64,000 nt of DNA, from NCBI GenBank assembly GCA_028826165.1, contig JAPDFW010000140.1:57138-121137 (forward strand). The letters are read 5' to 3'. This document shows positions 11,832 to 61,180 of the stretch, piece after piece. The translations under genes and the position numbers were made by a program. This stretch comes from Anaeramoeba ignava BMAN (Eukaryota > Protista > Anaeramoebae). A model generated the notes under the pieces. It was not told the DNA's origin and did not search any database. It saw only the letters and a list, made by a program, of their open reading frames with translations. How positions within the stretch are numbered: the stretch's first letter is position 1; each line of letters starts with the position of its first letter.

Positions 11832-11839
11832 GAATTCTT

Positions 11840-14381: not shown

Positions 14382-14481
14382 TTAAATTTAAATTATATAA
14401 TTATAATAAGAATAATAATTAGAAAAATGAAAAATGAAAAATGAAAAAAATATTTTTTCCGATTTGTTTTTTATCTTTTTT

Positions 14482-14943
14482 TTATTTTGAAATTCTTGCT
14501 ATTTTTTTATATGATTCATTTTCTTTTTTTAGTTTTTGATTCTTCTTTTCTAATTCTTTAATAATAAATTCATTTTTTGAACATTTTTCTTTAAAATTAA
14601 ATTTAATTGAAATTTTTTCAAAATTCGGTTTAAAAAGATCATAAAATTGATTATTTGGAATTTTTGAATTAAATGATTGGATTTTGTTTTTAAATTCTTC
14701 AATAAGATCAGAATAAATAGAAGAATTAGAAATAAATTCAATTTTTGAAGAGTTTCTTATTATCATTTGCATTTTTTTAAGAAAACAATTTAAAAAATGT
14801 TGATAAATTTTAATTTTGTTTTTTTCTTCTTCTATTTTTGATAAATTTTTTTTATATTCTTGATTAATATCTTCAAAAATTATATCAAAAGCTTGAGAAA
14901 TTTGTAAAGAAATAATTTTTGAATTGAGATCCTTTTTTTCCAT
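14482..14943 (-). CDS. Hypothetical protein, 153 aa, coiled-coil C-terminus
   Basis: ATG-initiated ORF with protein-like composition and a TCATTTT motif just upstream on the sense strand; no family recognised. Confidence 0.5.
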   Translation of the reverse strand: MEKKDLNSKIISLQISQAFDIIFEDINQEYKKNLSKIEEEKNKIKIYQHFLNCFLKKMQMIIRNSSKIEFISNSSIYSDLIEEFKNKIQSFNSKIPNNQFYDLFKPNFEKISIKFNFKEKCSKNEFIIKELEKKNQKLKKENESYKKIARISK

Positions 14944-33435: not shown

Positions 33436-34963
33436 TTAATTATCATTTTTTGCTTTTTCCAAATTTTCATTCGCAAAAAATTTCAATTCTTTCTTTTTTT
33501 CTTTTTCTATTTTTTGAAATCTTTCTTTGAAATAAAAAAGTCGAGAATTTCTATTTAATTGGAAATAATCAACAAAAAAATCAAAATCAAAAGATTTTTG
33601 TTCATCTTCAGATAAAGCAAAAAATTCTTGATCAGAAATTTGATCTGTATAAAGAAATTTAACAAACAAATCAATCACATTAAAGGATCTTCCAGTAAAA
33701 TCTTGAGTATAACTTGAATCATCTTGAGAAAGAGTAAAAAGTTGTCTGAATAATTCACTTCTTATTTCAAGAATAAGTTTATGAACCTTAATTTCTTGCT
33801 CATTAATTTTTATCACAAAATCTTTTGTGTCTTGTTTTTGGAATAATTTTCCAAATTGTTCCTGAAGTGTCAAATTGTGGGGAATTTTTATTCCAATTTC
33901 TTCAATAAGTTCTAATGATGTCTTTTTTTCTGTAATTTGAGTTGGAATTTGGACATCTGTTTCCAAAATTGAAATGAGTGTGTTATCCTCAATATTTTCA
34001 TCATCACTTCCCTCATCAATTAAATCTGAATCTTGGATATTTGTTTCCAATCCGCAATACAAATATTTGAAAATCATTTTGATTTGTTTATTGGAATGTT
34101 TAGCAAGTAAATCAGAAAGTTCTCCAACTGTTTTTCCTGTTCGAATTTCTATCAATGTTTTATGGACTAGAAAATCATTTATTTTTGAATCACCAAATTT
34201 TTGTATCCGAAAGAAATTAAGAAAATCTTGATTATATGAATAATAAGTGTCTAAAAATTGTTTCATCATCATATCCTGTGTATTAAATGATGGTTTTCTA
34301 TTCGAAATATCTTTTTGTATTGGATCAACTCCTTTTGAAATGAGATAATTGATTATTGCATAAGTTTCTTCTGTTGGATAAATATGATTCTGAAGTAAAA
34401 TACCGATTAAATTGAGATTCTTTCCAAAATGAATAAAAAATATGAATAATAAATAAAAAATATTTTTTGATGATTTGATAATTGTTTTTACTTGATCAAA
34501 TACAAAAGAACCTGATTCAATTAATATTTTTACTAATTCTAAATTCACTTTTTTATTTTCAAAAAGGAAATGCAATTCAGTTTTCTTAAATTTTGGGAAT
34601 GATTATTATTTGATTTAAATAAATAAATTCAAAAGAAATAAGAGGAAAAGAAGGAAAGAAAGAAATTTAGAGAATTTGTTTTAAAAGATGATTTACAGAT
34701 TCTATCTTTTGGTTTAAAACTGATCCATTTTCAATTAAGTATTTAAGGATTTCTGGTGTAATTGATGAATTTTGACAAATTGCATGAATATCTTTTCCCT
34801 ATTAATTTTTTTATATATTGATTTATTTCAAATTTTATTTCAAATTTTATTTCAAATTTTATTTCAAATTTTATTTCAAATTTTATTTCAAATTTTATTT
34901 CAAATTTTATTTCAAATTTTATTTCAAATTTTATTGATTGATTGATTGATTGATTTTATTGAT

Positions 34964-35004
<41 letters not shown>

Positions 35005-35063
35005 TATTGATTATTGATTGATTGATTGATTGATTTTATTGATTGATTTTATTGATTGATTTG

Positions 35064-35098
<35 letters not shown>

Positions 35099-35112
35099 TA
35101 TTTGATTGATTA

Positions 35113-35147
<35 letters not shown>

Positions 35148-35782
35148 TTATTGATTGATTGATTGATTTTATTGATTGATTTTATTGATTGATTTGATTT
35201 ATTGATTTACATTCTAAATAATAAATAACAATTTAAATTTTTTACATTGTTATTATTAATATAAAATGAAATTTTACTAATTCAGATATTTTCGCTCCTT
35301 TTTCAACAAGAAATTTTATTAATTCAATTTCTACAGAAGGATTTCTTAATAAACAAAATAGAGAATTCTAAATTAAAAATAAAAATGAATTTAAAAATGG
35401 ATTTGAAAATGAATTTAAAAATCAAAATAAAAATGAAAATAAAAATTACATTCTAATAATAAAATCGAATTTAAAATTTGAAATTTAAAATTTAATTGTT
35501 AAAAGAATTACTAAATTTCCCAATTCATTTTCATTTTTAAAATAAAAATTCCTTAACATTTGTAAATTAACTAATCTATTTAAACATAAACTGTTGAATA
35601 AATTCTAAAAAGAAAAATTACAAAATTTTATAAAATAAAAATGAAATTTTCAAAATTGAAAAAATTTTCACTTTTTTTTTAACATTATTTGAATCAAGAA
35701 TTTTATAAATTTCTTCAATATCAAGTGAATTTTTTAATTTATTTTCTAAAAATGATGAAAAATAATAATTTTCTGAAAACAT
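33436..35782 (-). CDS. Degenerate ankyrin-repeat plus BTB/POZ protein; exons 35782-35672, 35604-35512, 35452-35450, 35367-35278, 35213-35211, 34798-34697, 34584-34492, 34419-33436
   Basis: About 30-34 codon exons with ankyrin-like ELIKFLVEKGA, EILKYLIENGS and ELVKILIESGS; BTB segment KDFVIKINEQEIKVHKLILEIRSELFRQLF...LFVKFLYTD; two AG-AAT-GT microexons. Confidence 0.82.
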
Positions 35783-38943: not shown

Positions 38944-41900
38944 TTATATTTTATAATGAGAAAATCTATATTCTGGTTTTTGATAAAGTTCAATTTGCCA
39001 AGTTAAAGTAGATTCTTCATTTAATTGAAAATAATCTTGAACATATTTCAATTCATCAAGAACAAAAAAAGGTAAATCTAATTCTAAAGAATCAAAATAA
39101 AAAAATCGAATTAAACTCTGAATTGTTTGTTGTGTTTTCCCACTATAATCATGAACTGAATTTGATTTATCATTTACACTTGAAAACATTCCATTAAATA
39201 ATCCACTTCTTGCAGCCAAAACTATTTTATCAACCTTAATTGAAACATTATCCACAATTAAAGTAAAATCTTTTGAATCTTCATTATAATATAATTTTTC
39301 CAAATCCTTTAAAAATCCTTTTCGCCATTTTTTCTCTTCAATCCATTTATCATCAAATCCAATTTCTTTTGCCATTTCAAAGATTATTTTCTGGTACTTT
39401 TTTTTCAAATCTTTATTGATTTTTTTGATTAATTGATATTGATCATATTCATCTTTTTCACTTGAATTTTCAAGTGTTTTCAAATAATCTTTTGTTCCAT
39501 CATAAAATATTCCAGTATAAAGAAATCTCAAAAATAAACAAACATCTTCTGATTTATAATTTGAAAACATTTCTAAAAGATCATTTAGTTTTTCTTTTCC
39601 AATTCTCATTTTAATAATTTCTTGATGAGCTTCAAGTTTTCCATCAATTGTTTTTATTATTAAATTTGTTAAAGACTTTGTTTTATAAAGATTCCAAAAA
39701 TCTTCTGTAATTGAATTCCAAGATTTAATAATTTTATTTGAAATCAATCCTGATTTTATTGACAATCTAATTGTTTTTAACTTTTTTTTTTTTAAAAGAA
39801 AATTATTGGAAATTATAAATCTATTGATTAATAAAATTAATAAAAAAATATAAACTTGATTCTCTCGACTATATTCTGTTCCATAATCAAATAATAATTT
39901 AAGACATGGTTTTGTTCGACTAGAAAAAGCTGAATCTACAGGTTTTATATACTAATTAAAAAATAATATATTAAAAATGATTTTTGAAAAAAATTTTAAA
40001 TGAATTCACTTCCTAAATTAAAATTAAAATTAAAATTAAAATTAAAATTAAAATTAAAATTAAAATTAAAATTAAAATTAAAATTAAAATTAAAATTAAA
40101 ATTAAAATTAAAATTAAAATTAAAATTAAAATTAAAATTAAAAATTAAAATTAAAATTAAAATTAAAATTAAAATTAAAATTAAAATTAAAATTAAAATT
40201 AAAAATTAAAATTAAAATTAAAATTAAAATTTATATTCTGTTAATATTGTATTAATATTAAAATTAAAATTAAAATTAAAATTAAAATTAAAATTAAAAT
40301 TAAAATTAAAATTAAAATTAAAATTAAAATTAAAATTAAAATTAAAATTAAAATTAAAATTAAAATTAAAATTAAAATTTAAAATTAAAATTAAAATTAA
40401 AATTAAAATTAAAATTAAAATTAAAATTAAAATTAAAATTTATATTCTGTTAATATTGTATTAATATTATACATGTTTCTCATTTGGATTTGCTCCAAGT
40501 TTTAAAAGAAGTGTTAACAATTTTGGATTGCTTTTTTCACAAGCAATAGAAAGACAACTATTACTCTATAACAAATAAATAATCAAAATAAACTTCTTTC
40601 TTAAATTCTTTTAGTAAATAAAAAATAATAATTTACATGCTTTTCACGACTAAAAAAAAGAATAAAAATAAAAATAAAAATAAAAATGAAAATAAAAATA
40701 AAAATAAAAATAAAAATAAAAATAATTTATTCACTTTGCTTTAATACTTGCTCCACTTTTAATAAGAAATTCAATCACTTCATAATCAGGTAAATTTCTT
40801 GAACAAGCTAATTTAATTGCTGTTCTTCCCTGTATTTTTTTTTTCAAAGAGGAACAGAAATAAAAATTTTATCATTTCTAATTTAAATATTTTTTTTCCT
40901 TTAAATTTTACATACTAAATTATAAATAGAATAAAATATGAATAAAATTAACAAATATATAAAATAATTTACATTCTATTAATATTATTTATATTAATAT
41001 TATTTATATTAATATTATTTATATTAATATTATTTATATTAATATTATTTATATTAATATTATTTATATTAATATTATTTATATTAATATTATTTATATT
41101 AATAGTTTTAAATTCAAACATCTTCAGTAAATGGAACTTTTTTTTCAACTAATAATTTAATTGTATTAAGAGAAGCTCCCCAAAAAGCTGCTAAATGAAG
41201 ATAATTTTGTAACTTTTTATATAAATATAAAATATAAAATTAAAATATAAAATATAAATATAAAATTAAAATATAAATATAAAATTAAAATTAAAATATA
41301 TAAAATTAAAATTAAAATTAAAATTTATAATTAGATTAAAAATAATTTCCAAACTAAAAAAAAAGAAGATTATTTTTGTATTTAAAAAAATTTCCTATTT
41401 TTGTCTTTTTCATTCTTAAATTTACCATAAAATTTTTCATAAACATTTGCTCCATTTTGAACTAAAAAATTAACAAATTCGAATTCATCTTTCTTTTTTA
41501 TAGCATAATAAAGTGCTTTTTTTTGCTATTATTTAATAAATTTTTTTTAAATAAAAAATCAATATTAAATTCTATAATTTAAATTTACAAACTAAATTAA
41601 TATTAAATTAAATTAATATTAAATTAAATAAATAATTAAAATTTTTAATTTACTTCCTAAAAATTTATTTACATTTTGTTTTTGAATAAATAAAATAATC
41701 ATTTCTTTTTCTTTTTTTTAAATAAATTTTTTTTACATCAACTGAATTAACTGAAAAACCCATATCAAGTAAGAATTGAAAAAATTCAATATTTTGAGAT
41801 GTTTTTGAAGCAATAACAAAATAACTTTGACAGTTCTAAATTAATTATTATAAGAATAATTCGATATAAAAAAAGAATTTTAAATTAACTTTTTTTTTTA

Positions 41901-44900
41901 TAAAATACTTCAATACTATCTTGCAATTTAGCTCCATTTACTTGAAGTAATTTTGCAATTTCTATATTTTGTAAATATTTAATAACATAATCAAGTGGAC
42001 GAATATATTCATCTTTAAATTCATTTTTCTGATCAATAAATTGAAAATTATTAATTAAATGAATTTCTAAAAAAAAATATTATTATTGTTTCATTTATTA
42101 CAAAATAAATATTTGGATCTGCATAATAATTTAGTAATATCCTTAAATATTTTTCAGGATTTTTCGATTTAGTAGCAATCCCAATAGGCAATTTTCCATG
42201 CTTTAATTTTTAATTTATATAAATTTATAAATACAATTTCAAAATGGAAATTAAATTACAAAATATTCTTTTAAAAAATAATAAAATGATTTAATTTACT
42301 TTCTAAAACGAAAAAAATCAAAAATAAAAATTAATCATTTCTTTCTTTTTATATTAAATTATTAATTATTTTACAGATTTAATATTTGGATTTGCATGTG
42401 ATTCAAGTAATAACTTAATAATTTCTGGTTCATTTTCTGCAAATAATGCAAGATGTAATGGAGTTTCAAACTAATAATTTTAAATTAAGAAAAATTATTT
42501 TAAATCAAATTAATTTTTTTTTAAAAAAAATTATTTACATCCTATATTTTTTTATCAATTAAAAAAAATCTCTTTCTTTTTAATTAATTTATTAATTTAA
42601 ATAAAATTACGTTCTTTAAATTAAATTAAATTAAATTAAATTAAATTAAATTAAATTAAATTAGATTATATAAAATAAAATCAAACATTTTTTCCATCAA
42701 TATAAGCTCCATTATTAAGTAATAATTGAATAACATTTTTATCATGATTATATTTACATGCATAATGTAATGGTGTATCAAAATTCTAAAACAAATTTAA
42801 AATTTTAAATTTCAAATTTCAAATTTCAAATTGCAAATTAAATTTTACTTTCTAATTTAAATTAATTTAAATTAAATTAAAATAATTTAAAATAATTTCT
42901 CTTAATTTGAAATGCTTTTTTTTATTAAAAATCAATTAATACATTAGAATATTTAATTTTTGAACCTGAAGAAATTAATAATTTAACAATTTCAATAGAA
43001 TTTTCTTCAATTTGTAAAGCAAAATGTAAAGGAGAATTTCCCTAAAAATATATCAAAGAATATTTAAATATTTCTTTCTTTTAAATTATAGAGAAAAAAA
43101 AATATTTACATTCTAATATAGAATTATATATATTTTTTTTTTAAAAAAAATGTTTCATAAAAAGAAAAAGATCAAAATTTACACTTTTATTTAGAAAAAA
43201 TAAAATGAATTTTTTCTTTGGATAGATTAAAAAAAAATTTAGTTATAATTTTAATTACGAATCACAAATATTTACATCTGCTCCATTGTTAATTAAAAAT
43301 TCAATAATAGAATAAGTTGGTTTTTTTGATTGAAAAATTTTTATTAATGGAGTTTCTTCCTATAATTTAATTAAATTATAAAAAATAGGAATGGAATTAT
43401 TTTTAAATTTTTAAAATGAATTTTTCTTTACATTCTAAATAACAGAAAAAAAATTTTTTTAAAAAAAGAAAATGATTAATTTTAGATCAAAAAAATTTTA
43501 TTACAATCTATTAAATTATTTTTTAGTTTTAGTTTTATTTATTTTATTTTTTAATTAATGAATACATTTTTTGCATTAATTTCTGTTTTTGCAGTTATTA
43601 ATTCTTTGATATATTGTTCTGAAAAAATATCACAGGCAATATGAAGAGAATTTTCTTTCTATTTTATTTATAAAAAGCATATTAAAAAAATAAACAAACT
43701 TTATTCAAAATAAAAAATTACCATCTAAAATTATATTTAAGTATTTTTAATTAGAAAAAAAAATTATTTAAATAAAATACATACTATTTTTAAAAATAAA
43801 AATAAATAAATTTAATTTTAAAATTCAGATTAAATTATCAATAAATTTTTTTTTAATAAAAACATTAGAAAGATTAGGATTTGCATTTTTTTGTAAGAAA
43901 AGCTTAAAAATTTGAATATCATTTTTATGTGAAATGAAATCTTGAAATGGAGTAATTCCCTATTATTAATAATAATAATACTAAATAAATAATCAAAAAA
44001 AAAAAAAAAAACTTTCAAAATAAAAATTACATTCTAAATAAAGAATAGATATTAAAACAATTATTCAAACTTAAAATGAAAAGGTAATTAATTTTTTTTA
44101 CATTCTAAATTAATATATATATAAATATCCTAATTTTGTTGTTTTAATTTTTAAAATAAAACAAACATCTTGAAAATTTGGATCAGTTCCTAAATTAATT
44201 AATTTTTCAATTATATTTAAATCTACATTATAACTACATGCTAAATGTAATGGTGTTTTTTTCTAATAATAAAAAAGATTTATGATTATTAAATTAAATT
44301 ATAATATTAAAAAAAAAATTTAAAATTTACGCACTTTTTTTTTGGAAAATGGATTATAAACAAAATAACTTTTTTTTTATTCAAAATGAGTAAAAGAAAA
44401 AATATTAACATTCTAAATAATTATTAAATTTTTATATCATCTTAAATTATTTTTTAAAAAAAAAATATGCAAATCTACATTAAATTTATCAATATTTGCT
44501 CCATGAGAAATCAACTTTTCAAAAATTTCTAATGAATAACCGTAATAAATTAAAAAATGAAGTGGAGTATCTCCCTAAATAATAATAATAATAAAACTAA
44601 TTAAAATTAAAATTTAAAATTCTTTTTATTTTTTTTTACATCCTAAATCCAAAAAAAATATTAATAACATTATTAAAAGAATAAATTATATTGGAAATAA
44701 ATTTACATTCTAATTTAAATTTAAACTTATAAACATAATAAATGAAATTGTTTTTTTATTACATTTTGTATATTGATATCAATATCACTTTCAATTAAAA
44801 CTTCAATAATATCAATTTGAGCATTAATTTTAATTGAGAAATGTAGATAACTATCTCCAAAATTCTAATTAACAAAAACATAAATAAATTTCATTCGAAA

Positions 44901-46664
44901 TAAATATTATTTAAATCTAATAATTACTAAAATATGATTCATATTAACTCCTGATTCAATGAATGTTTTAATTAAAAGAGGATTTCCATATTTAATTGCA
45001 GTTTCAAGTAAAGTAACTTGCTAAAAATTGAGAATAAATAAAAATATAATAATATATAATATAAATCAAAATTACAAGCTAAAAAGAAAACATAAGAAAA
45101 TTAAAATGGTTTTTTTTTTGGAAATGAAATCAATACAGAATCATTTCTTTTCCATATATTTTCAGTTTTTTTAATTAAAAAACGAATAATTTCAAGATCA
45201 AAATTTTCTTGAATTGCGATATGAAATGGAGAAATGCACTTTTTATTTTTTTTAAAAAAAATAAAATATAAAAAATTTACATTTCTAATTTATAGTTTTT
45301 TTTTTTTACTTCAGGCTAAAAAAAAGGAATAATTAAAAAAATGAGAAATTTAAACATATTTTCTTTTAATTGAAAAAAAAAGAAAATAAACAGTTTGAAA
45401 CTAAATTACAAAATAATTTTTAATTTTAATTTTTAATTTCAAATTTTAAATTTTAATTTTACATTTGAAATTAAAAAATCAGCTTTAAATTCAGAAACAA
45501 TTTCAAGAATTTCTAATTTAGGTTTATTTTTAAAAAGAATATGTAAAGGAGTATCTCCCTAAAATGAAAAATATAATGATATTTAATACTAAAAAAATAA
45601 AATGGAAAATTTTTTTTAAACGAAAATGATTTACATCCTTTTAAATTAAAAAAATAATATTTTAATTTCCAATTTTGGAAAATAAATCTTTTTTGTTTTA
45701 CAATCTTTTCAAAAAATAAAATTCAAATAAAATTTAAATAAATTATAATAAATCTAAATATTTTTTTTACATTAACTGAATCCAATTTAGCTCCATTTTT
45801 TAAAAGTAGTTTTATAATTTGAAGATTTGTTTCTTTTTGGAAAACAATATGAAGAGCAGTTAATTTTGACTGATAAATAGAAATGAAAAATTATTTTGAT
45901 TAAAAAGTAAATTTTCTAAAAGGAAAAAAAAGAAGAGATTCTTTTTAGATAATTTTACAAACTAAAAATAATTAAAAAGAATAAATCTAAATTAAATAAA
46001 AAGAAAAAAAAATGATTTACTTTCTAAAAATGAAAGGAAATTAAAAATAAAGTTTGAATTTGCATTTAAAATTTAAAACTTAAAATAAAAAACTACTTCA
46101 AATTCATTTGGATTTGAACCTAAATCAATAAGTGTTTGAATAAATTCAATTTTAGGATTTTTTTGTAAAGAAATTTGCAAAGGTGTAAATCCCTAATAAT
46201 TATAATTAAATATAAATAATAAATTTACAAAATGGAAAATTGTTTGTTTTTTTTTTTAAATTTACATTCTTTTTGATTATTTTTATTTAAAATGAAAATT
46301 TAAATAAATAATTTCTTTTTTCAAACAAAACAAACTAATTTAAAATTATTTACAATCTATTTAAAATAGAAAAAATAAAATTTATATAAATTTAAAATGA
46401 TTAAATCTTAAAAACAAATGAATAAAATTCTTTTATAACTTTTTGGTTAATATTTTTATTGTCTAAAAGATGTTTTAAAGTTTCAATATCATTTTCTGAT
46501 ATAATTTTTTCAAAAATTTCCTAATTAAAAAAAATTTTAATTTTAAATTTTAAATTTTAATTTGAAAATTATTTTAATACAATATCAATTAAATTTGAAT
46601 CATCTTCACTTAAATCAGAAGTATCATCTGAATCACATAAACCAAAACTTTGAAAGAAAGACAT
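38944..46664 (-). CDS. Ankyrin-repeat (about 22 repeats) plus C-terminal BTB/POZ protein, about 1090 aa, about 57 exons including about 32 microexons
   Basis: ATG at 46664. Long exons: 46664-46581, 46520-46440, 46192-46097, 45869-45771, 45558-45463, 45238-45137, 45020-44928, 44864-44763, 44574-44479, 44262-44167, 43959-43864, 43658-43566, 43359-43259, 43041-42943, 42785-42687, 42470-42375, 42200-42102, 42028-41909, 41835-41737, 41525-41426, 41212-41120, 40829-40735, 40565-40473, 39951-39856, 39780-38944. Internal exons read GxTPLH...LL..GA..N. The last exon carries KDFTLIVDNVSIKVDKIVLAARSGLFNGMF (BTB). Confidence 0.9.
40010..46356 (-). other. Array of AG-flanked, GT-flanked microexons (27 of 3 nt; one each of 1, 6, 9 and 13 nt)
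   Basis: 3-nt exons (lowest coordinate, codon): 46354 ATT, 46266 AAT, 46021 AAA, 45959 TTT, 45702 ATT, 45635 GAT, 45076 CTT, 44707 AAT, 44640 GAT, 44410 AAT, 44331 TGC, 44102 AAT, 44031 AAT, 43781 TAT, 43722 ATG, 43505 ATT, 43432 AAT, 43110 AAT, 42849 AAA, 42611 AAC, 42539 GAT, 42300 AAA, 41654 GAA, 41589 TTT, 40973 AAT, 40912 TAT, 40010 GAA. Others: 43183 (1 nt), 45310-45315, 45392-45400, 40637-40649. Confidence 0.85.
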
Positions 46665-46758
46665 TTTTATTATAAATTTTTATAAAAAGAAAAATGAAAA
46701 AAAAAAAATTAAAAAAATTTAAATTCATTTTTTTTCATTTTTATTTTTTTTATTAAAA

Positions 46759-48691
46759 ATGCTTCCGAATTGGGCAATTAATTTACAAGAAAAAAATAAA
46801 CTTAGAAACTCAAATTTATCAATAAAGAAAAAAGAACAAGAAGAAAAGGACAAATTTACTGATGATTCAAATTATTCATTAAAGAAAATTAATGAAAAAA
46901 TGAATAATTTATTAAAACGTTCAATAATTAATTTTTATATAAAAAAACAAGAACAAAATTCTTTACAAATTGAAGATTTACAAATTCTTTATAATTCAAT
47001 TATGGAAAACTCAGTTGAATTTAAAAATGAATCTTGGGTTAATTTCAATTCCAATTTTAAAAAAAAAAGCAATTTAACGAATATTAATATAAATATTAAA
47101 TATTAAATATTAAATATTAAATATTAAATATTAAATATTAAATATTAAATATTAAATATTAAATATTAAAATAAATATTAAATATTAAATATTAAATATT
47201 AAATAATAAATATTAAATATTAAAATAAATATTAAATATTAAATATTAAATAATAAATATTAAATATTAATTAATAAATATTAAAATAAATATTAAATAT
47301 TAAATATTAAATATTAAATATTAAATATTAAATATTAAATATTAAATTAAATATTAAAATAAATATTAAATTAAATAATAAATATTAAAAATAAATATTA
47401 AATATAAATATTAAAATATAAATATTAAATATTAAATATTAAATTAAATATTAAATATTAAAAATAAATATTAAAAATAAATATTAAATATTAAAATAAA
47501 TATTAAATTAAATATTAAATTAAATATTAAATATAAAAATAAATATTAAATTAAATATTAAATTAAATAATAAATATTAAATATTAAATAATAAATTAAA
47601 TATTAAAATAAATATTAAATATTAAATATTAAAATAAATATTAAAATAAATATTAAATTAAATATTAAAATAAATATTAAATATTAAATATAAATATTAA
47701 TATAAATATTAAATTAAATATTAAAAAATAGATCAATTATGAATCATTCTCAAAAGCAAGAGAATCTTTACCACTAAAATTGAAAAGATTTCTAAAACCA
47801 TCATATTTTCTACGATTCAAACAAAACAAAAAGGGAGAAATTGAATCAGCAAATTTATTAGTAGTAATAATGTATATGATAACATTTGAAAACAACCGAA
47901 TCAAGTTAATGAAATTTGATTCTGAAGGAAATCATCGATTGAATGAAATTGAGTTAAGAAAATTCCTCCTTTACGAAGCAAACACAATTGGATCACTTCA
48001 AGAAATACCACAACCAATTAAACCTTTATATCTTTCAATTATCACAAAAAAAATATATTTCGTTTTGAAAAAAACACACAATAAAGAAATTGATATTGAT
48101 GAGTTTGCTATGAGTGATGTTCTGGAAGAGTTTTCAAATCTCAAGAATGCAGCAAAACTAAGCGCCAATGAGGAAAAAAAGAACTGGTTTTCAATCAAAT
48201 CAGTGATGTCAATCATTCAAGATTTCGCTAGGATTTCGGATAACGAAGACAAATTGACAAAGGAGCAATTCGAAAGACTGGGCGGAGTCACAAATACTTT
48301 TGTGGACTTACTGTTCCAAGAACTCCCAACAAACAGAATGACTTTTGATAACTTTATTGATTATGTTCTTGCTTCAACTTACTTGTCAACTAATTGCATT
48401 GCTAGTTTGAAATATTTTTGGAAAGTTTTTGATATCAAAAAAAATGGGAAATTTGATATGTTTAGTTTGAGGTTTTTCTTCCAAGAAATATCACAAGATT
48501 TGGAAAAGATGAAAGCAAAACCAATTAATATTGATTGGATTCGTGATGAAATATTTGATATGATCAACCCTAAAAATCGTACTTATATCACTTTTAATGA
48601 TATTGTTGATTCAAAAAGAGGCGATAATTTTTTTAGGATTTTAATGAATACCGAGGAATTTGTTGAATGGGAAGAAAGAGAATCAAATTAA
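46759..48691 (+). CDS. PP2A regulatory subunit B'' (PPP2R3C-like, EF-hand), 2 exons (46759-47037, 47732-48691)
   Basis: INYESF, NWFS, LKYFWKVFDIKKNGKFDMFSLRFFF and DEIFDMINPK...ITFNDI are typical of the B'' family. The in-phase GT-AG intron is filled with (AAATATT)n. Confidence 0.82.
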
Positions 48692-48939: not shown

Positions 48940-51645
48940 TTAAATATCTAAATCAGCTTGAAGTTCTTTTTCTTCTTGTTTTTGATTTTTTCTTGTTTTT
49001 TTCTTATATAAAGTAATTCCAATAATAATTATTAAAATAGCAATAATTGGAACAAGAATCCCAATAGTTATTGCTGTTGTGTTGGAATTGTTTGAATCAG
49101 TTGATTGAGTTGGTTGATAAGGAGATAATGTTGTAATTGATGTTGTTGAATTAGTTCCTGAATATTCATTATTTAAACAATTTAATGTAGATGATTGTTG
49201 AACTGAAATTTCATAATATTTTCCTCCTTCTAATCCTGTAATTAAATAATAATTGAATAAAGTTGTTAAACAAATTTTTATTGAATTAAATTTAAATGAA
49301 TATGCTTTTAATCCACTTGATAAAATTAATGAATCCCAACTGCAAATAAATCCATTAATTAATGAATCACAATTTAATGAAGTAATATTTCCTAATTTAG
49401 CTCTTGTTGAAATAATTGAACTAGGTAATCCTAAATATAGTGTTTCACAATTTAAATCAACACATCCTCGAATTGAAATATTATATTCAATATTTCCTGA
49501 TATTTCACTTATTCTTCCAATTACTTCATTTCCACTTAAATCAAGAGATGTGAATTTTTGCCAATTTGTTTCATTATCAAGTGAAATTGAATAATTATTT
49601 GCATTTGTTAATTTTGTGAAATTAAATTCAATTTCTTCAATTTTGGAAATTGTTTCATAAATTATTGGAGAAGTTAAATTATCAGTTATAATTGAAATTG
49701 ATGAAATATATCCACATTTTCCATTTGAATTACATGCTGATATATTGATTTGATATTCTTGATTTGGAAATTGAACTGTAAATTGTTGATTTGATGATGT
49801 TGGTTGATAATTTCCTGAATCATTTTGATAAATTGATTGATAAGTAAAATTATAATAAAATGGAATTGAACAATTAATTGGTTGATTCCAATTACAATTA
49901 ATATCTAATAAATTTGAAATTGAACATGTTAAATTTGTAACTTCTCCAAATATTAATGAAATTGATGATTCAACAATTTCTCCTTTATCATCTCCTTCAC
50001 ATTCAAGTGTTCTACATCCACAAATTGAAATATTATAATCATTTTCACATTCAAAATTATTCCAAAGATAATCAAGTGAAGAATTATCAACTGAAATGAA
50101 AGATATTAAATCAGGTTGAGATTGAATGAAATAAGAAAGATTATAATGATTAAGATGAGCAATTCCTTCATCAATCTGAACATTTGGATAATTCCAAGTA
50201 ACATTAATTGAATAATTTGTAGGATTTGATAATTGGAAATCTTTTACAGAATCAATTTTTGATGTTAAATTAATGAAAGAAGAAGATTCACCACATATCA
50301 TTGATTCATTATCACAAGCTTTGATTTGAATTGAATAATATTCATTTCCAGTAATATTATCATAAATTGAAGAATTAAATAATTGATAATAAACATTCTC
50401 ATTTTCAAGAATTGGATAATCAATATCAATCCAATCATATCCATAATTAATTTGATATTTCAAAGTTGAAGGAAATTCAATTTTATTCCAATAACAATCA
50501 AATGATGAAAACAAAGATGAACAATTAACAATATTAACTTGAGGAATTAAACTAGCTTCATAAACAAATACTTGATTTGCATCCCCAGATCCAATAACAG
50601 TAAAATTCCCATAAATTGAAACAGAACATCCAAATTCTGAAGGTTCACTCAAATTTTTTTCAAGATTCCAAATTAACTCATTATATCTATAAATAAATGC
50701 TTTTTTTGTAATATAAGAACTAATAACAATAACATCTTCATAAATTGAAACAGTCTTTCCAAAATTTGAAACAGAAGATTCATTCAAAATTTGTTCTTGA
50801 TTCCAAATTGATCCATTATATCTGTAAATAAATGCTTTTTTTGCAATATAAGCTCCAATAACAATAACATCTTCATAAATTGAAACAGAATAGCCAAACA
50901 TTGAAGCTGAAGATTCATTCAAAATTTGTTCTTCATTCCAAAATGCTCCATTATATCTGTAAATAAATGCTAGTTTTGCACTAGTTCCAATAACAGTAAC
51001 ATTCTCATAAATTGAAACAGAACATCCAAAACTTGAAACTGGTTCATTCAAATTTTTTTCTTGATTCCAAAATGTTCCATTATATCTGTAAATATATGCT
51101 TGATTTGCACTAGTTCCAATAACAGTAACATTCTCATAAATTGAAACAGAATATCCAAAATATATAACTGATTCATTCAAAATTTGTTCTTCATTCCAAA
51201 ATGTTCCATTATATCTGTAAATATATGCTTGTTTTGCACCAGAAGCACCAATAACAATAACATCTTCATAAACTGAAACAGAATATCCAAAATATGAAGC
51301 TGATTCATTCAAAGTTTGTTCAAGTTCAAAATTTGTTCCATTATATCTGTAAATATATGTTTGATTTGCAGAATAAGCTCCAATAACAAGAACATCTTTA
51401 TAAATTGAAACAGAATATCCAAAATTTCCTGATGCTGGAAATTGATCTAATAAATTCCAAATCCAAGCTTCATCTGGAGTAGAATAATATCTTGTTGTTT
51501 CTGTTAATGTTTCTATTTCTGTTAATATTGGTGATATTGATATTAATGATGGAATTGATTTTTGATTTTGATTTTGATTTTGATTTGATTTAATTAAGAA
51601 AATATTAATAATTAAGAAAAAGGAAAAGAAAAGAATTAATTTCAT
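48940..51645 (-). CDS. Type I membrane protein: signal peptide, 7 FG-GAP-like blades, FN3-like domains, TM, short tail (copy 1, intact)
   Basis: Seven ~44-aa FGxSVSIYxxVxVIG...YIYRYNG repeats, Cys-containing FN3-like modules (NVTWNYP...YNLSY...YNISICGC), and a hydrophobic TM followed by KKKTRK. Confidence 0.88.
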   Translation of the reverse strand: MKLILFFSFFLIINIFLIKSNQNQNQNQKSIPSLISISPILTEIETLTETTRYYSTPDEAWIWNLLDQFPASGNFGYSVSIYKDVLVIGAYSANQTYIYRYNGTNFELEQTLNESASYFGYSVSVYEDVIVIGASGAKQAYIYRYNGTFWNEEQILNESVIYFGYSVSIYENVTVIGTSANQAYIYRYNGTFWNQEKNLNEPVSSFGCSVSIYENVTVIGTSAKLAFIYRYNGAFWNEEQILNESSASMFGYSVSIYEDVIVIGAYIAKKAFIYRYNGSIWNQEQILNESSVSNFGKTVSIYEDVIVISSYITKKAFIYRYNELIWNLEKNLSEPSEFGCSVSIYGNFTVIGSGDANQVFVYEASLIPQVNIVNCSSLFSSFDCYWNKIEFPSTLKYQINYGYDWIDIDYPILENENVYYQLFNSSIYDNITGNEYYSIQIKACDNESMICGESSSFINLTSKIDSVKDFQLSNPTNYSINVTWNYPNVQIDEGIAHLNHYNLSYFIQSQPDLISFISVDNSSLDYLWNNFECENDYNISICGCRTLECEGDDKGEIVESSISLIFGEVTNLTCSISNLLDINCNWNQPINCSIPFYYNFTYQSIYQNDSGNYQPTSSNQQFTVQFPNQEYQINISACNSNGKCGYISSISIITDNLTSPIIYETISKIEEIEFNFTKLTNANNYSISLDNETNWQKFTSLDLSGNEVIGRISEISGNIEYNISIRGCVDLNCETLYLGLPSSIISTRAKLGNITSLNCDSLINGFICSWDSLILSSGLKAYSFKFNSIKICLTTLFNYYLITGLEGGKYYEISVQQSSTLNCLNNEYSGTNSTTSITTLSPYQPTQSTDSNNSNTTAITIGILVPIIAILIIIIGITLYKKKTRKNQKQEEKELQADLDI

Positions 51646-52038
51646 TTTTTGTTTTGTTTCTTTTTGTTTGCTATTTTTTTTTGAATAAAAATAAAAATAA
51701 ATTAAAATAAAAATTAAATTAAATTAAATTAATATAAAATTGTGTTTTGTTTTTTTTTCTTACTTTTTGTTTGTTTCTTTTTTTTTTTGCTTTTTTTGAA
51801 TTAAATAAAAAATAAAAAATTAAATTAAATTATTATAAAATTGTGTTTTGTGTTTTTGTGTTGTTTGTTACTTTTATAAAAGATGTAGAATGAAAAGAAA
51901 AAGAAAAAATGATCTTTTGTTTTTTTAATTTTAATTTTAATTTTAATTTAAATTTTAATTTTAATTTTAATTTAAATTTTAATTTTAATTTTAATTTTAA
52001 TTTTAATTTAAATTTTGATTTTAATTTTGATTTTGATT

Positions 52039-53808
52039 TTAATTTTGATTATTAAATTTTTTAATTAATAAATCAAATAAATTTGGATTTGTTTGATTTA
52101 ATTGAAAATAATCAATTCCAATTTCAATTTCATTAATGATTTCTTGTGTAATTTGAATTTCATCTTTAATTTGATTTGAATAAATCCAATATTCAAATAT
52201 TTGAAATGATTTATTACTTAATTCACTATAATCTCTAACTTTATTTGATTTATCTTCTGTAACAGATAAAAACATTCCTCGATATAATTCACTTCTCATT
52301 ATTAATATTAATTTAGGAAATTTATATTGTTTTTCTTTTCTTTCAATAATAAAATCTTTTTCATTTTCATTTTCATTTAAATAAATTCTTTTCATTGTTT
52401 CTTCAATTTTTTCATTTGAATTTATAATTTCTTTAATTTCAGAATATAATTTTGAATTTATTATTTTGTTTGAATAAATCATTTCAAATATTTGATTTGA
52501 TTCTTTAATTGATTTTTTTGAAATAATTTCTTTAAGTTTTTCAATTTCAATTTGATTTTGATTTAATCTATATTTCAATATTAATTTATGAGCTTCGATT
52601 ATTTCTCCATTTTCGGTTTTAAATGAAATATCACAAAATTCTTTTCTTCTAAATAGTTTTATCAAATCTTCTTCAAGATTGGAAAAAAAAGGAGGAGAAT
52701 AATAAAGAAATGATTTATGATATCCACAAGAAAGATGATAATTAGAAATATTTTCATTAAATCTTAATTTAGGAAGTTCAATTTGAATTGGAATTGATTG
52801 ATTATTTCTATTTACAGCTCCTAATTGATTAAAAGAATTATTTCCAAATCCAATCAATTTTGAATTTGATGTTAAAATCAAAGTATGAGAACCTCCAACA
52901 GAAATTTCAAGAATAATATCATTATCATTTTCAAATAAATATGATTTGATTTCAGTAAATTCATAAGTATTTTCATCATTTTGACCAAGTCCATTTAATC
53001 TAAAATATCCACATGAATAAAGTTTTCTTTTTAGATTTTCAAATTCAATCAACATTATTGAATGAGCAACTCCACATTGAATATCAATTATTTTACCTTT
53101 TGGAATATTTTGGATTTTGGTTAATTTTTGAATTTTTATTTCTTTTCTTGATTCTCCTAATCCAACTTGACCAAATTGATTATCACCACATCCAAATAAT
53201 TCTTGATTTGAATTTAAAAGAAAAACGTATTTTGAAGTATTTCCTGAAAATATTTTAGAAACATTTTTCATCATTAAAATTGGTTTTTCTGTTTCTTCAA
53301 GTGTTTCAGAATCAAATCCAAGTTGGTCATATCTATTTGAACCAATTCCATAAGCATTATGATTTGAAGTTAATAAGTAAATTGAATTTCTTCCAGAAAC
53401 AATATCTTTGATTATTTTATCATTTTTATCTTCAATTAATGATGAAATATTGATAAATTTATTTGGATTTTCTGGATTTATATCTTCTCCTTTGGCAAAT
53501 ACATTTCCTTCTATTGTTAAAATAGCTTCATTTTGAAAACCAACAGTTACTTTTTGAATATTTTCTTCAATTTGGATTTTTTCAGGATTTTGTTTTGAAT
53601 ATCTTAAATATTCTATTGTTTTTCCATTTTCAAAAAGGAAAATTATTGCAAAAGAACTTGTTGAAATTTGTTTAATTTGTTTTTCATTTTCATTTTCATT
53701 TTCATTTTCATTTTCAAATTTAAATTGAATTGATTTTGTTATTATATTTGATTCATTTTTGAAAAGAGTTGGAAATTGATTTTTACCAAAAAATAAAATT
53801 TCTTTCAT
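52039..53808 (-). CDS. RCC1-like repeat plus BTB/POZ protein, intronless
   Basis: RCC1 motifs GSNRYDQLG, GCGDNQFGQVGLG, IQCGVAHS, ISVGGSHTLIL and GFGNNSFNQLG; BTB segments FCDISF...AHKLILKYR and KDFII...LILIMRSELYRGMF. Confidence 0.9.
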   Translation of the reverse strand: MKEILFFGKNQFPTLFKNESNIITKSIQFKFENENENENENEKQIKQISTSSFAIIFLFENGKTIEYLRYSKQNPEKIQIEENIQKVTVGFQNEAILTIEGNVFAKGEDINPENPNKFINISSLIEDKNDKIIKDIVSGRNSIYLLTSNHNAYGIGSNRYDQLGFDSETLEETEKPILMMKNVSKIFSGNTSKYVFLLNSNQELFGCGDNQFGQVGLGESRKEIKIQKLTKIQNIPKGKIIDIQCGVAHSIMLIEFENLKRKLYSCGYFRLNGLGQNDENTYEFTEIKSYLFENDNDIILEISVGGSHTLILTSNSKLIGFGNNSFNQLGAVNRNNQSIPIQIELPKLRFNENISNYHLSCGYHKSFLYYSPPFFSNLEEDLIKLFRRKEFCDISFKTENGEIIEAHKLILKYRLNQNQIEIEKLKEIISKKSIKESNQIFEMIYSNKIINSKLYSEIKEIINSNEKIEETMKRIYLNENENEKDFIIERKEKQYKFPKLILIMRSELYRGMFLSVTEDKSNKVRDYSELSNKSFQIFEYWIYSNQIKDEIQITQEIINEIEIGIDYFQLNQTNPNLFDLLIKKFNNQN

Positions 53809-53961
53809 TTTTGAAAAAGAAAAAAAAGAAAAAAATGATTTTGGAATTTTAATTTTAATTTTAATTTTGATTTTGATTTTGATTTTAATTTTTAATCAAA
53901 AAAAAAGAAAAAAAGAAAAAAGAATTTTGAATTGGAATTGGAATTGGAATTGGAATTGGAA

Positions 53962-56746
53962 TTAAAGATCTAAATTATCTTGAAGTTCTTTTTCTTCTTG
54001 TTTTTGATTTTGATTTTGATTTTTAGATTGTTTTTTTCTTGTTGTTTTCTTATATAAAAGAATTCCAATAATAATTATTAAAATAGCAATAATTGGAACA
54101 AGAATTCCAACAGTTATTGCTGTTGTGTTTGAATTGTTTGAATTATCAGTTGTTTGAGTTGGCTGATAAGGAGATAAAATTATAACTGATGTTGTTGAAT
54201 TAATTCCTGAATATTCATTATTTAAACAATTTAATGTAGATGATTGTTGAACTGAAATTTCATAATATTCTCCTCCATTTAATCCTGAAGGAATTAAATA
54301 ATAATTCATTAAAGTTGTTAAACAAATTTTTGTTGAATTGTAAGTAAATGAATATGCTTTTAATCCACTTGATAAATTTAATGAATTCCAATTACAAAGA
54401 AATCCATTAATTAATGAGATACAATTTAATGAAGTAATATTTCCTAATTTAGCTCTTGTTGAAATAATTGAACTAGGTAATCCTAAATATAGTGTTTCAC
54501 AATTTAAATCAACACATCCTCGAATTGAAATATTATATTCAATATTTCCTGATATTTCACTTATTATTCCAATTACTTCATTTCCACTTAAATCAAGAGA
54601 TGTGAATTTTTGCCAATTTGTTCCATTATCAAGTGAAATTGAATAATTATTTGCATTTGTTAATTTTGTGAAATTAAATTCAATTTCTTCAATTTTAGAA
54701 ATTGTTTCATAAATTATTGGAGAAGTTAAATTATCAGTTATAATTGAAATTGATGAAATATATCCACATTTTCCATTTGAATCACATGCTGATATATTGA
54801 TTTGATATTCTTGATTTGGAAATTGAACTGTAAATTGTTGATTTGATGATGTTGGTTGATAATTTCCTGAATCATTTTGATAAATTGATTGATAAGTTAA
54901 ATTATAATAAGATGGAATTGAATAAGTAATTGGTTGATTCCAATTACAATTAATATCTAATAAATTTGAAATTGAACATGTTAAATTTGTAACTTCTCCA
55001 AATAATGTTGAAATTGATGATTCAACAATTTCTCCTTTATCATCTCCTTCACACTCAAGTGTTCTACATCCACAAATTGAAATATTATAATCACTTCCAC
55101 ATTCTAAATTATTCAAAAAATAATCAAGCGAAGAATTTTCAACTGAAATGAAAGATATTAAATCAGGTTGAGATTGAATGAAATAAGAAAGATTATAATG
55201 ATCAAGATGAGCAATTCCTTCATCAATCTGAACATTTGGATAATTCCAAGTAACATTAATTGAATAATTTGAAGGATTTGATAATTGGAAATCTTTTACA
55301 GAATCAATTTTTGATGTTAAATTAATGAAAGAAGAAGATTCACCACATATCATTGATTCATTATCACAAGCTTTGATTTGAATTGAATAATATTCATTTC
55401 CAGTAATATTATCATAAAATGAAGAATTAAATAATTGATAATAAACATTCTCATTTTCAAGAATTGGATAATCAATATCAATCCAATCATATCCATAATT
55501 AATTTGATAAATCAAAGTTGAAGGAAATTGAATTTCATCCCAATAACAATCAAATGATGAAAACAAAGATGAACAATTAACAATATTAACTTGAGGAATT
55601 AAACTAGCTTCATAAACAAATGTTTGGCTTGCATCCCCAGCTCCAATAACAGTAAAATTCCCATAAACTGAAACAGAACATCCAAATTCTGAAGCTGATT
55701 CACTCAAAATTTTTTCTTGATTCCAAATTAACTCATTGTATCTGTAAATAAATGCTTTTTTTGCAGTATAAGTTCCAATAGCAATAACATCTTCATAAAT
55801 TGAAAGAGTCCATCCAAAATTTGAAGATGATTCATTCAAAATTTGTTCTTGATTCCAAAATGATCCATTATATCTGTAAATAAATACTTGATTTGCATCA
55901 TAAGTTCCAATAACAATAACATCTTCATAAATTGAAACAGAATATCCAAATCTTGAAGTTGATTCATTGAAATGTTGTTCTTGATTCCAAAATGATCCAT
56001 TATATCTGTAAACAAATGTTTGATTTGCATCATAAGTTCCAACAACAGTAACATTCTCATAAATTGAAAGAGAAAACCCAAATTCTGAAGGTCCACTCAA
56101 GATTTGTTCTTGATTCCAAAATGTTCCATTATATCTGTAAATATATGCTTGATTTTTACCAGAAACCCCAACAATAGTAACATTCTCATAAACTGAAACA
56201 GACTGTCCAAAATTTGAATTTGTTTCACTCAAAATTTGTTCTTCATTCCAAAATGTTCCGTTATATCTGTAAATATATGCTTTTTTTGCACCAGAAGCAC
56301 CAATAACAATAACATCTTCATAAATTGAAACAGGATATCCAAACAATGAAGCTGATTCATTCAAAGTTTGTTCAAGTTCAAAATTTGTTCCATTATATCT
56401 GTAAATATATGCTTTATTTGAAGCCCAAGCACCAATAACAAGAACATCTTTATAAACTGAAACAGAACCTCCAAAATACATTGAACCTGAAAATTGATCT
56501 AATAAATTCCAAATCCAAGCTTCATCTGGAGTAGAATAATATCTTGTTGTTTCTGTTAATGTTTCTATTTCTTTTAATATTGGTGATATTGATATTAATG
56601 ATGGAATTGATTTTTGATTTTGATTTTGATTTTGATTTTTGATTTTGATTTTGATTTTGATTTTGATTTTGATTTTGATTTTGATTTGATTTAATTAAGA
56701 AAATATTGATAATTAAGAAAAAGGAAAAGAAAAGAATTAATTTCAT
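53962..56746 (-). CDS. FG-GAP/FN3 membrane protein copy 2 (one apparent frameshift in the NQ repeat near 56610-56640)
   Basis: Same signal peptide as copy 1 at 56746 (MKLILFFSFFLIINIFLIKS) and an 839-aa ORF paralogous to copy 1. Confidence 0.85.
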
Positions 56747-56749
56747 TTT

Positions 56750-59700: not shown

Positions 59701-61180
59701 AAATATGAAGATGATTCATACAAAGTTTGTTCTTCATTCCAAAATGTACCATTATATCTGTAAATATATGTTTTATTTGCAATAGTTCCAACAACAGTAA
59801 CATTCTCATAAACTGAAACAGACTGTCCAAAATATGAAACTGATTCATACAAAATTTGTTCTTCATTCCAAAATGTTCCGTTATATCTGTAAATATATGC
59901 TTTAGTTACATCAGTAGATCCAATAACAATAACATCTTCATAAACTGAAACACTCAATCCAAAATATGAAGGCCCACTCAAAATTTGTTCAAGTTCAAAA
60001 TTTGTTCCATTATATCTGTAAATATATGCTTTATTTGCACCATAAGCACCAATAACAAGAATATCTTTATAAACTGAAACAGAATGTCCAAAAAATCCTG
60101 AAGCTGAAAATTGATCTAATAAATTCCAAATCCAAGCTTCATCTGGAGTAGAATAATATCTTGTTGTTTCTGTTTCTTTTTAATGTTGGTATTAATGATG
60201 GAATTGATTTTTGATTTTGATTTTGATTTTGATTTTGATTTTTGATTTTGATTTTGATTTTGATTTTGATTTTGATTTTGATTTTGATTTTGATTTGATT
60301 TAATTAAGAAAATATTGATAATTAAGAAAAAGGAAAAGAAAAAAGAATTAATTTCATTTTTGTTTTGTTTTCTTTTTTTGTTTGCTATTTTTGAATAAAA
60401 ATAAAAATAAAAATTAAGTAAAATTAATTTAATCAAATTTGGAAAAATAAATTTTATTAATTTTTGAAAGATAAAATGGGGTATTTTTAATTTTAATTTA
60501 TAATTTTAATTTTAATTTTAATTTTGATTTTTAATTTTAATTTTAATTTTAATTTGAATTTTAATTTTAATTTTAATTTTAATTTTAATTTTAATTAACT
60601 TACTTTTGAAAAGATAAATGGAAAAATGAAAAATGAGAAAAATGATCTTTTTCTTTTGTTGTTTTGTTTTAATTTATTTAATTAAAAATTTTTCTTGTTA
60701 TTTTTAATTTTAATCCCCTAAAACAAAAATAATAAAAAGAAAAACAAAATTATTTTTAAATTTAATTTGATTTAATTTCTTTTTAAATTAATTTGATTAA
60801 ATTAATTTATTTTAATCAAATTAATTATTTTATTTTTATTGATTAAATTTAAATTAAAATAAATAAAAGAAATAAATAAAAGAAAGAGATCAAATAATTT
60901 AAAATTAAAATAAAAAATATTAAATTGTTTAAAATTTATAATAATTCTTTTAATTTTATTATTTTTGATTATTAATTTCTTTTTAATTTTGATTTTAATT
61001 TTGAATTTTTGAATTTTTGATTTTTAAATTTATTTCTTCTTTTTCTTTTTAAAATAATTTAATTAAAAACAAAAAGCAAAATAGAAAGTTGTTTTTGGAA
61101 AATAGATTGTTTTGAATTTTTGAAAAGAAAAAGAAAAAGAAAAAGAAAAAGAATTTGGAAAATTAAAGTTGGAATTTAAA
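56750..61180. repeat. Tandem segmental duplication: intergenic 56750-57588 is nearly identical to 60358-61180 (period about 3.6 kb)
   Basis: Shared landmarks GATAAAATGGGGTATTTTT, AATCCCCTAAAA, AGAGATCAAAT and AATAGAAAGTTGTTTTTGGAAAATAGATTG occur in both. Confidence 0.92.
57589..60357 (-). CDS. FG-GAP/FN3 membrane protein copy 3 (several single-base frameshifts; gene or pseudogene)
   Basis: Consecutive ORF fragments collinear with copies 1 and 2 from ATG 60357 to stop 57589. Confidence 0.75.

Follow-up and report, generated by a model that had tools for sequence, protein, structure and literature searches.

The micro-exon genes (MEGs) of Schistosoma contain many exons of 3-81 bp in series (PMC10526429; PMC4015677). 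Isolated tiny exons have also been described, including a 1-nt exon in Arabidopsis (PMC4674806), a 1-nt exon in CYP621A of Fusarium (PMC12940212), a 3-base exon in MAP4K5 (PMC8632122) and plant microexons of 15 nt or less (PMC8831610). Here we describe an ankyrin-BTB-BTB gene of Anaeramoeba ignava, located on the minus strand (46664-38944) of a 64,000-nucleotide stretch of DNA, the window (G000:C141:57138-121137 of the 42.8-Mb assembly). Between the long exons of this gene lie 27 units of the form AG-NNN-GT. From the sequence we strongly infer that these units are included in the mRNA as real, mostly constitutive single-codon exons, a reading to which we assign a probability of about 0.78.

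The MEGs and the A. ignava gene both have several very short symmetric exons in series and are handled poorly by gene finders. Since all MEG exons are multiples of 3, any combination stays in frame. Most of the MEG coding sequence resides in the 3-81 bp exons, and the introns reach 5 kb. Alternative splicing diversifies the encoded proteins, which are disordered and secreted. In the A. ignava gene, on the other hand, almost all small exons are exactly 3 nt long, occupy a fixed structural position of a folded repeat and alternate with 96-nt exons, and the introns are 53-99 nt. The small exons account for only 101 of the 3240 coding bases; the others lie in long exons of 71-120 nt and in the last exon, of 837 nt. 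The defining feature of a MEG is thus absent.

The isolated 1-3 nt exons of plants, fungi and animals are alike in being spliced by the ordinary spliceosome and in being routinely missed in annotation, but they occur once per gene and not 27 times, usually as tandem pairs. Ankyrin genes with one repeat per exon are known, for example the vertebrate ankyrins, where exon boundaries also follow the 33-residue repeat but the hairpin residues are inside the repeat exons. Literature searches gave no description of tandem arrays of 3-nt exons, in agreement with the original prediction that this architecture was undescribed, and no mention of microexons in Anaeramoeba, three Anaeramoeba genome papers included. 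What is new about the predicted exons compared to known tiny exons is that nearly all consist of one codon, that they form tandem pairs at a fixed position of the repeat, and that their number is large.

Predicted exon layout of the gene

On the minus strand 24 long exons can be read, in addition to the 837-nt last exon. Of these, 22 have a length of 93-120 nt and carry one ankyrin repeat each, as had been proposed; the ankyrin repeat exons measure 93-102 nt with a single exception of 120 nt. The 27 three-base units were recovered in the same number and at the same places as originally predicted, each bounded by AG and GT. The gene model further requires a 1-nt exon (43183), a 6-nt exon (45315-45310) and a 13-nt exon (40649-40637), one of each. 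All 30 small exons are bounded by AG and GT and have introns of at least 53 nt on both sides. The introns of the model (n=53) range from 53 to 460 nt with a median of 70 nt, and the plain introns (n=5) from 60 to 213 nt. The upper end of the predicted span, 46664, is correct, but its lower end at 39781 is only the last intron boundary and the gene continues through the BTB-BTB tail to 38944. The G+C content is about 15-17% in the window and 9% in the introns of the gene; the reported A+T content is 80.65% for the A. ignava genome and 91.86% for its introns (PMC11550330).

The predicted exons are listed below in window coordinates, all on the minus strand, with the lengths of the preceding/following introns.

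46581..46664, exon 1, start codon at 46664; open frame from ATG, donor GTATTA; absent from GenBank model
46440..46520, exon 2, helix part of first degenerate repeat
46354..46356, 3-nt exon ATT (Ile); AG-ATT-GTAAAT, introns 83/85 nt
46266..46268, 3-nt exon AAT (Asn); AG-AAT-GTAAAT, introns 85/73
46097..46192, ankyrin repeat exon (GFTPLQ...); Pfam Ank, profile 2-29
46021..46023, 3-nt exon AAA (Lys); AG-AAA-GTAAAT, introns 73/59
45959..45961, 3-nt exon TTT (Phe); AG-TTT-GTAAAA, introns 59/89; junction one residue over canonical
45771..45869, ankyrin repeat exon; Pfam Ank E=1.6e-4, profile 3-32
45702..45704, 3-nt exon ATT (Ile); introns 66/64
45635..45637, 3-nt exon GAT (Asp); AG-GAT-GTAAAT, introns 64/76
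45463..45558, ankyrin repeat exon (GDTPLH...); own-gene hidden Markov model (HMM) 1.5e-10; alone without Pfam match
45310..45315, 6-nt exon CCTGAA (Pro-Glu); AG-N6-GTAAAA, introns 147/71
45137..45238, ankyrin repeat exon, 34 aa; Pfam Ank profile 4-32
45076..45078, 3-nt exon CTT (Leu); introns 58/55
44928..45020, ankyrin repeat exon; Pfam Ank_3
44763..44864, ankyrin repeat exon, two residues early (NF-GDSYLH), no small exon before; residue 3 = Pfam Ank profile 2; serves as internal control for compensation
44707..44709, 3-nt exon AAT (Asn); AG-AAT-GTAAAT, introns 53/64
44640..44642, 3-nt exon GAT (Asp); introns 64/65
44479..44574, ankyrin repeat exon; Pfam Ank E=3.7e-6, profile 2-30
44410..44412, 3-nt exon AAT (Asn); donor GTTAAT, introns 66/76
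44331..44333, 3-nt exon TGC (Cys); AG-TGC-GTAAAT, introns 76/68
44167..44262, ankyrin repeat exon; Pfam Ank E=4.1e-6
44102..44104, 3-nt exon AAT (Asn); introns 62/68
44031..44033, 3-nt exon AAT (Asn); introns 68/71
43864..43959, ankyrin repeat exon; Pfam Ank profile 2-32
43781..43783, 3-nt exon TAT (Tyr); introns 80/56
43722..43724, 3-nt exon ATG (Met), the GenBank start codon; introns 56/63; GenBank protein begins M-KENSLH
43566..43658, ankyrin repeat exon, first long exon of GenBank model; own-gene HMM
43505..43507, 3-nt exon ATT (Ile); introns 58/70
43432..43434, 3-nt exon AAT (Asn); introns 70/72
43259..43359, ankyrin repeat exon, 101 nt, phase-2 end (..GADVNICD + TC); Pfam Ank aligns through GADVNICD
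43183, 1-nt exon T, completes Ser codon TC-T; AG-T-GTAAAT, introns 75/70
43110..43112, 3-nt exon AAT (Asn); AG-AAT-GTAAAT, introns 70/68
42943..43041, ankyrin repeat exon; Pfam Ank E=1.2e-5
42849..42851, 3-nt exon AAA (Lys), only unit of its junction; introns 91/63; next exon one residue early, total 10
42687..42785, ankyrin repeat exon (N-FDTPLH); Pfam Ank E=3.1e-8
42611..42613, 3-nt exon AAC (Asn); introns 73/69
42539..42541, 3-nt exon GAT (Asp); AG-GAT-GTAAAT, introns 69/68
42375..42470, ankyrin repeat exon; Pfam Ank E=8.3e-8
42300..42302, 3-nt exon AAA (Lys), only unit of its junction; introns 72/99; next exon one residue early
42102..42200, ankyrin repeat exon (H-GKLPIG); Pfam Ank_3 profile 1-30
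41909..42028, divergent repeat exon, 120 nt; plain 73-nt introns on each side; alone without Pfam match
41737..41835, ankyrin repeat exon; own-gene HMM
41654..41656, 3-nt exon GAA (Glu); AG-GAA-GTAAAT, introns 80/62
41589..41591, 3-nt exon TTT (Phe); AG-TTT-GTAAAT, introns 62/63
41426..41525, ankyrin repeat exon, 100 nt, phase-1 end, frame anomaly
41120..41212, ankyrin repeat exon, acceptor 41212 or 41190; 41212 ankyrin-like but frame-breaking, 41190 (GenBank) open
40973..40975, 3-nt exon AAT (Asn); AG-AAT-GTAAAT, introns 144/58
40912..40914, 3-nt exon TAT (Tyr); introns 58/82
40735..40829, ankyrin repeat exon, 95 nt, phase-2 end
40637..40649, 13-nt exon, frame-restoring (..N-R-E-K-H); introns 85/71; also in GenBank model
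40473..40565, ankyrin repeat exon; Pfam Ank E=2.6e-4
40010..40012, 3-nt exon GAA (Glu); AG-GAA-GTGAAT, introns 460/58
39856..39951, last ankyrin repeat exon, degenerate; own-gene HMM 1.3e-5
38944..39780, last exon, BTB-BTB tail and stop codon; Pfam BTB E=4.7e-12

When the 30 small exons were all included and the acceptor at 41190 was used, the reading frame was open from the ATG at 46664 to the stop at 38944, and the 55 exons encoded 1079 aa. An open frame requires both the 1-nt and the 13-nt exon. Omitting the 1-nt exon breaks the frame, because use of the donor at 43259 leaves a Ser codon that the T at 43183 has to complete. When the ankyrin exons were scanned singly, 13 of 19 matched Pfam PF00023 with E-values down to 3e-8. 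Seven of the 19 exceeded the gathering score of this model on their own, and two others matched only Ank_3. The last exon matched BTB (PF00651) in two stretches. The product is predicted to be an adaptor of ca. 1079 residues with some 22 ankyrin repeats and a double BTB tail. Pairing of ankyrin and BTB domains is typical of substrate adaptors of CUL3 ubiquitin ligases, in which CUL3 is bound by the BTB domain and the substrate by the repeats, and at the family level this domain pairing suggests that the protein is a putative CUL3-type ligase substrate adaptor.

Indirect evidence for the three-base units as exons

The case for exons is built on five independent lines of indirect evidence: intron geometry, signal strength, coding character, fit to the fold and compensation. 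On the sense strand of the region 39600-46900 there are 28 instances of AG-N3-GTA[AT], as against none on the antisense (plus) strand, while each of the other spacers from 0 to 12 nt was found 0-3 times. No excess of spacing 3 was observed in seven control loci of the A. ignava genome (70 kb, both strands). Two AG-NNN-GT matches, at 46334 and 43698, were rejected as probable chance occurrences; they lie 19-23 nt from a neighboring unit and have weak donors. The units divide the gaps between long exons into introns of 53-99 nt, apart from a few longer, satellite-filled ones, with a median of 70 nt, which confirmed the claim that these sub-introns resemble the plain introns in size. If units were placed randomly in the gaps, the probability that all sub-introns would be at least 53 nt long is about 3.5e-18.

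The donor GTAAA[AT] follows 21 of the 30 small exons as compared to 5 of 23 long exons (p=8e-4). Such strong donors fit exons that are too small to be helped by exon definition. As claimed earlier, none of the 27 codons is a stop; one stop was found among 96 units in paralogues, whereas stops account for 9.8% of all triplets of these same introns (combined p=4e-5). The triplet TAG, which would suit pairing with U1, is never used among the units. Asn and Asp codons make up 12 of the 27 units against an expected 10.5% (p=7e-6). An Rfam search of the genome for U1 gave no match, nor did the controls. Neighboring sub-introns were no more similar to each other than distant ones (p=0.33), which does not support recent duplication of an intron together with its codon as the origin of the units.

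Inside the intron following the 6-nt exon there is a 4-nt unit, AG-AAAT-GTAAAT, at approximately 45281-45284 (minus strand), which could be a small exon in decay or a decoy that shifts the frame. Satellites fill two introns on the minus strand, at 40013-40472 (a 6-nt unit over about 440 nt) and 40976-41119 (a 15-nt unit, about eight copies). Similar satellites are scattered over the genome and dominated the DNA self-search; a search of the genome for recent paralogues with 42300-46200 yielded satellite-repeat matches only.

Fit to the ankyrin hairpin

The consensus of designed ankyrin repeats contains the motif D-x-x-G-x-TPLH. Each predicted long exon ends on the conserved Asp/Asn of the β-hairpin and the next begins at the Gly of G-x-TPLH. 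The two residues encoded by the small exons are presumably the x-x positions of this motif, at the target-contacting tip of the hairpin. Single long exons cover positions 2-32 of the 33 positions of the Pfam Ank profile, and the units fill exactly the two that remain. Where a long exon starts at profile position 1 or 33, no more than one unit precedes it. The linkers proposed originally were read exactly as given, i.e. DSVN-I-D-GDTPLH, NIQN-N-D-GDTPLH, DKFN-N-C-KKTPLH, NFQD-N-N-GITPF, NLSN-Y-M-KENSLH, NAKN-I-N-EETPL and DGKN-N-D-FETPLH.

To quantify the fit, we counted the residues that separate the Ala in 'GA' from the Thr in 'TPLH'. With the units included the mean was 10.0 (s.d. 0.56) and the canonical 10 residues were found exactly at 13 of 19 junctions; without them the mean was 8.26 (s.d. 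0.91). The idea that the units restore the ankyrin linker was thus borne out. Furthermore, the number of units was inversely correlated with the number of hairpin residues carried by the long exons themselves (r=-0.81, p=3e-5). A single unit lies before each of the two exons that begin one residue early (42785 and 42200), and none before the exon that begins two residues early (44864).

Among 236 ankyrin proteins from other organisms, 72% of the junctions have 10 residues and 1.6% have 8, whereas 8 residues occur at 30% of the junctions in the annotated A. ignava BTB-tail family. The modal length is 8 in 26 of the 64 proteins of this family with enough repeats to score. The simplest reading of this excess is that the annotation systematically drops two codons per repeat. 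An intronless ankyrin gene in one of the control loci (L030) has 10-11 residues at 12 of 12 junctions. This gene (G000:C35:300000-309999, plus strand, 7753-9151) consists of 13 contiguous repeats followed by a BTB tail at G000:C35:309295, and the ankyrin-BTB family thus includes both intronless and intron-rich members.

Paralogues and genome-wide occurrence

The strict motif TTAG-N3-GTAAAT occurs 524 times in the genome, as compared to 175 times for N2 and 108 times for N4. Since this motif captures only 6 of the 27 units of the gene, the number of units in the whole genome is, by rough extrapolation, of the order of a thousand or above. In each of twelve paralogous loci that contain clusters of this motif, ankyrin exons are present on the strand of the motif. 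Their 51 inter-exon gaps contain 96 sense units with spacing 3, 0-14 with other spacings and 3 antisense units. Strand, position between ankyrin exons and the sum of hairpin residues played no role in the selection of these loci. An exon-only hairpin length of 8 goes with two units at 18 of 21 junctions, and a length of 9 with one unit at 8 of 11 (Fisher p=9e-5, with the reservation that junctions of one gene are not independent). Two annotated A. ignava BTB-tail proteins map to motif-bearing loci (P0092 to L017 and P0019 to L019). The genome contains at least 142 similar BTB tails, and the open frames to which many of them belong are 800-2600 aa long.

One paralogue (L016; G000:C20:64000-73999, minus strand, locus positions 1506-3062) has eight small units in a single 880-nt gap and six in the next. 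The eight-unit gap lies between two ankyrin exons and contains seven 3-nt units and one 6-nt unit. No long open frame was found between the small units of this locus. The multi-unit gaps may represent long loops or alternative choice.

Observations against inclusion

Several observations weigh against the units being exons that are included in the mRNA. The frame also stays open when all 27 three-base exons are omitted, which means that the reading frame cannot discriminate between inclusion and skipping. The public, RNA-seq-era annotation contains a protein of 698 aa, KAJ5066572.1 ('ankyrin repeat-containing protein [Anaeramoeba ignava]'), that starts at the ATG unit at 43724 and splices all later long exons directly, giving 8-residue hairpins. 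A search for sequencing runs covering 40800-46700 gave no RNA run. The protein matches to the GenBank protein, used in part and as a whole, were limited to A. ignava proteins from the genome annotation and to unrelated ankyrin proteins, and none of them was derived from a transcript of this gene or its kin. Six of the 19 junctions are one residue off 10, and the raw unit counts in the 12 paralogous loci are biased upward by the motif search with which the loci were picked. The nearest homologue from A. flamelloides (P0281; 6.8 kb, 8001-14842, 545 residues; two strains, L001 and L002) showed no AG-N3-GT excess in either strain, and the design may therefore be specific to the A. ignava lineage.

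A further difficulty is the junction from 41426 to 41212, where the ankyrin-like acceptor is never in frame. Use of acceptor 41212 after the phase-1 exon 41525-41426 gives 60 stops, and no 2-nt exon is available in the 213-nt intron at 41426. The acceptor at 41190 alone rescues the frame, at the cost of the TPLH equivalent of the next repeat. The anomaly may be due to a recent 1-nt change, an assembly error or a genuine alternative site.

The GenBank model agrees with ours in the open frame 38944-39765 (minus strand), which is 100% identical to residues 426-698 of KAJ5066572.1, and in the 13-nt exon and acceptor 41190. Eleven upstream exons (46664-43864) are absent from it. To stay in frame it takes an early donor at 43276, by which the well-matching GADVNICD segment is lost. 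That the units are skipped in this model, in which one of them serves as start codon, agrees with the earlier expectation that gene predictors would miss them. The A. ignava annotation made use of Hisat2, and the RNA-seq reads of strain BMAN are public under BioProject PRJNA634776 (PMC11550330). Short-read aligners of this kind cannot place 3-nt exons, so the absence of the units from the GenBank model would be expected either way.

Proposed mechanism and alternative explanations

In the proposed arrangement the helices of each repeat would be encoded by one exon of about 96 nt and the two hairpin-tip residues each by a separate 3-nt exon, flanked by ordinary introns of 53-99 nt with an AG and a strong GTAAA(T/A) donor. 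Splice sites would most likely be paired across each of these 53-99 nt introns. Because the introns are short, each is probably recognized as a unit, by intron definition. Removal of one flanking intron would join the codon to an exon of normal size, and the 3-nt exon would thus never be defined alone.

The units could also be real exons that are used alternatively, such that the length and identity of the hairpin tip vary and one gene gives many adaptor isoforms. This is unlikely, but deserves consideration. Each 3-nt exon can be skipped without loss of frame and the encoded residues are hairpin-tip positions. Alternative use would also fit the paralogue in which eight and then six small units follow one another in a gap without an intervening long exon, and the near-miss units of the locus, one of 4 nt near 45284 and two that form close pairs, at 46334 and 43698. 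However, the rule that the hairpin sums to exactly 10 residues with all units counted favors constitutive inclusion, the 1-nt and 13-nt exons can never be left out, and the small exons have strong donors, unlike the weak ones of regulated cassettes.

Rather doubtful is a splicing-based diversity system, in which codon-sized exons would be included, skipped or chosen, sometimes from arrays of six to eight units per gap as in the paralogue on G000:C20, thereby varying two target-contacting hairpin-tip residues per repeat. Hairpin-tip positions are randomized in designed ankyrin binders (DARPins), and the small-exon residues match the x-x positions randomized in DARPin libraries. DARPins are an engineering concept, and we know of no natural mechanism that varies these positions by splicing. 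If such a system did exist, a single Ank-BTB gene could give rise to a large number of different substrate adaptors for ubiquitin ligases and would be nature's counterpart to a DARPin library.

It is very improbable that the units are not used at all, and are cryptic or relic pairs of splice sites in single introns of 180-250 nt. In that case the mRNA would be that of the GenBank model with its 8-residue hairpins. This model skips the units with the frame kept, and no transcript contradicts it. Nevertheless, it would not explain why the spacing is exactly 3, why stops are missing and Asn/Asp codons enriched, why the sub-introns have the sizes they do, or why units and exon-borne residues compensate each other. 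It would also need a hairpin length that is found at 1.6% of junctions in other ankyrin proteins, and it forces the use of donor 43276, dropping GADVNICD.

Recursive splice sites are known from long introns of Drosophila and vertebrates, where, as in the units, a strong 5' splice site comes right after a 3' splice site, but with the AG directly abutting the GT so that nothing is left in the mRNA. That the units are ratchet points of this type for stepwise intron removal is scarcely credible: although an AG directly before a strong donor is their hallmark, zero-length AG-GTA[AT] occurs 0 times on the sense strand of the locus and 0 times in the 51 paralogue gaps, the three bases between AG and GT would remain in the mRNA if the sites were used, and introns of about 200 nt are far below known recursion sizes.

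Implications of the predicted single-codon exons

If RNA confirms that the units are exons, this would be the densest use of minimal exons that we found described: one gene would contain 27 exons of a single codon, and the genome as a whole probably more than a thousand. The gene would then offer a natural system for examining the minimum exon size that the spliceosome handles routinely and whether intron definition alone is sufficient, and it could reveal how one-codon exons arise. For an entire class of A. ignava proteins the annotated ankyrin hairpins are probably too short by two residues, as the modal length in 26 of 64 scorable BTB-family proteins suggests. Microexon-blind pipelines would repeat this error in other AT-rich protists. 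The location of binding-surface residues on separate exons raises the idea of binding diversity generated by splicing.

Other genes in the window

A second, shorter ankyrin-BTB gene is present at 33436-35782 (minus strand). It has two AG-AAT-GTAA units (35452 and 35213) and two 5-nt AG..GT units (34701 and 34538). An intronless gene at 52039-53808 (minus strand) encodes RCC1-like repeats joined to a BTB-BTB tail of the same kind. The region 48940-59981 (minus strand) harbors a tandem family of large intronless genes for proteins with FG-GAP-like repeats and a C-terminal membrane anchor; its members are 901 aa and 839 aa long, and a third copy is split into several open frames.

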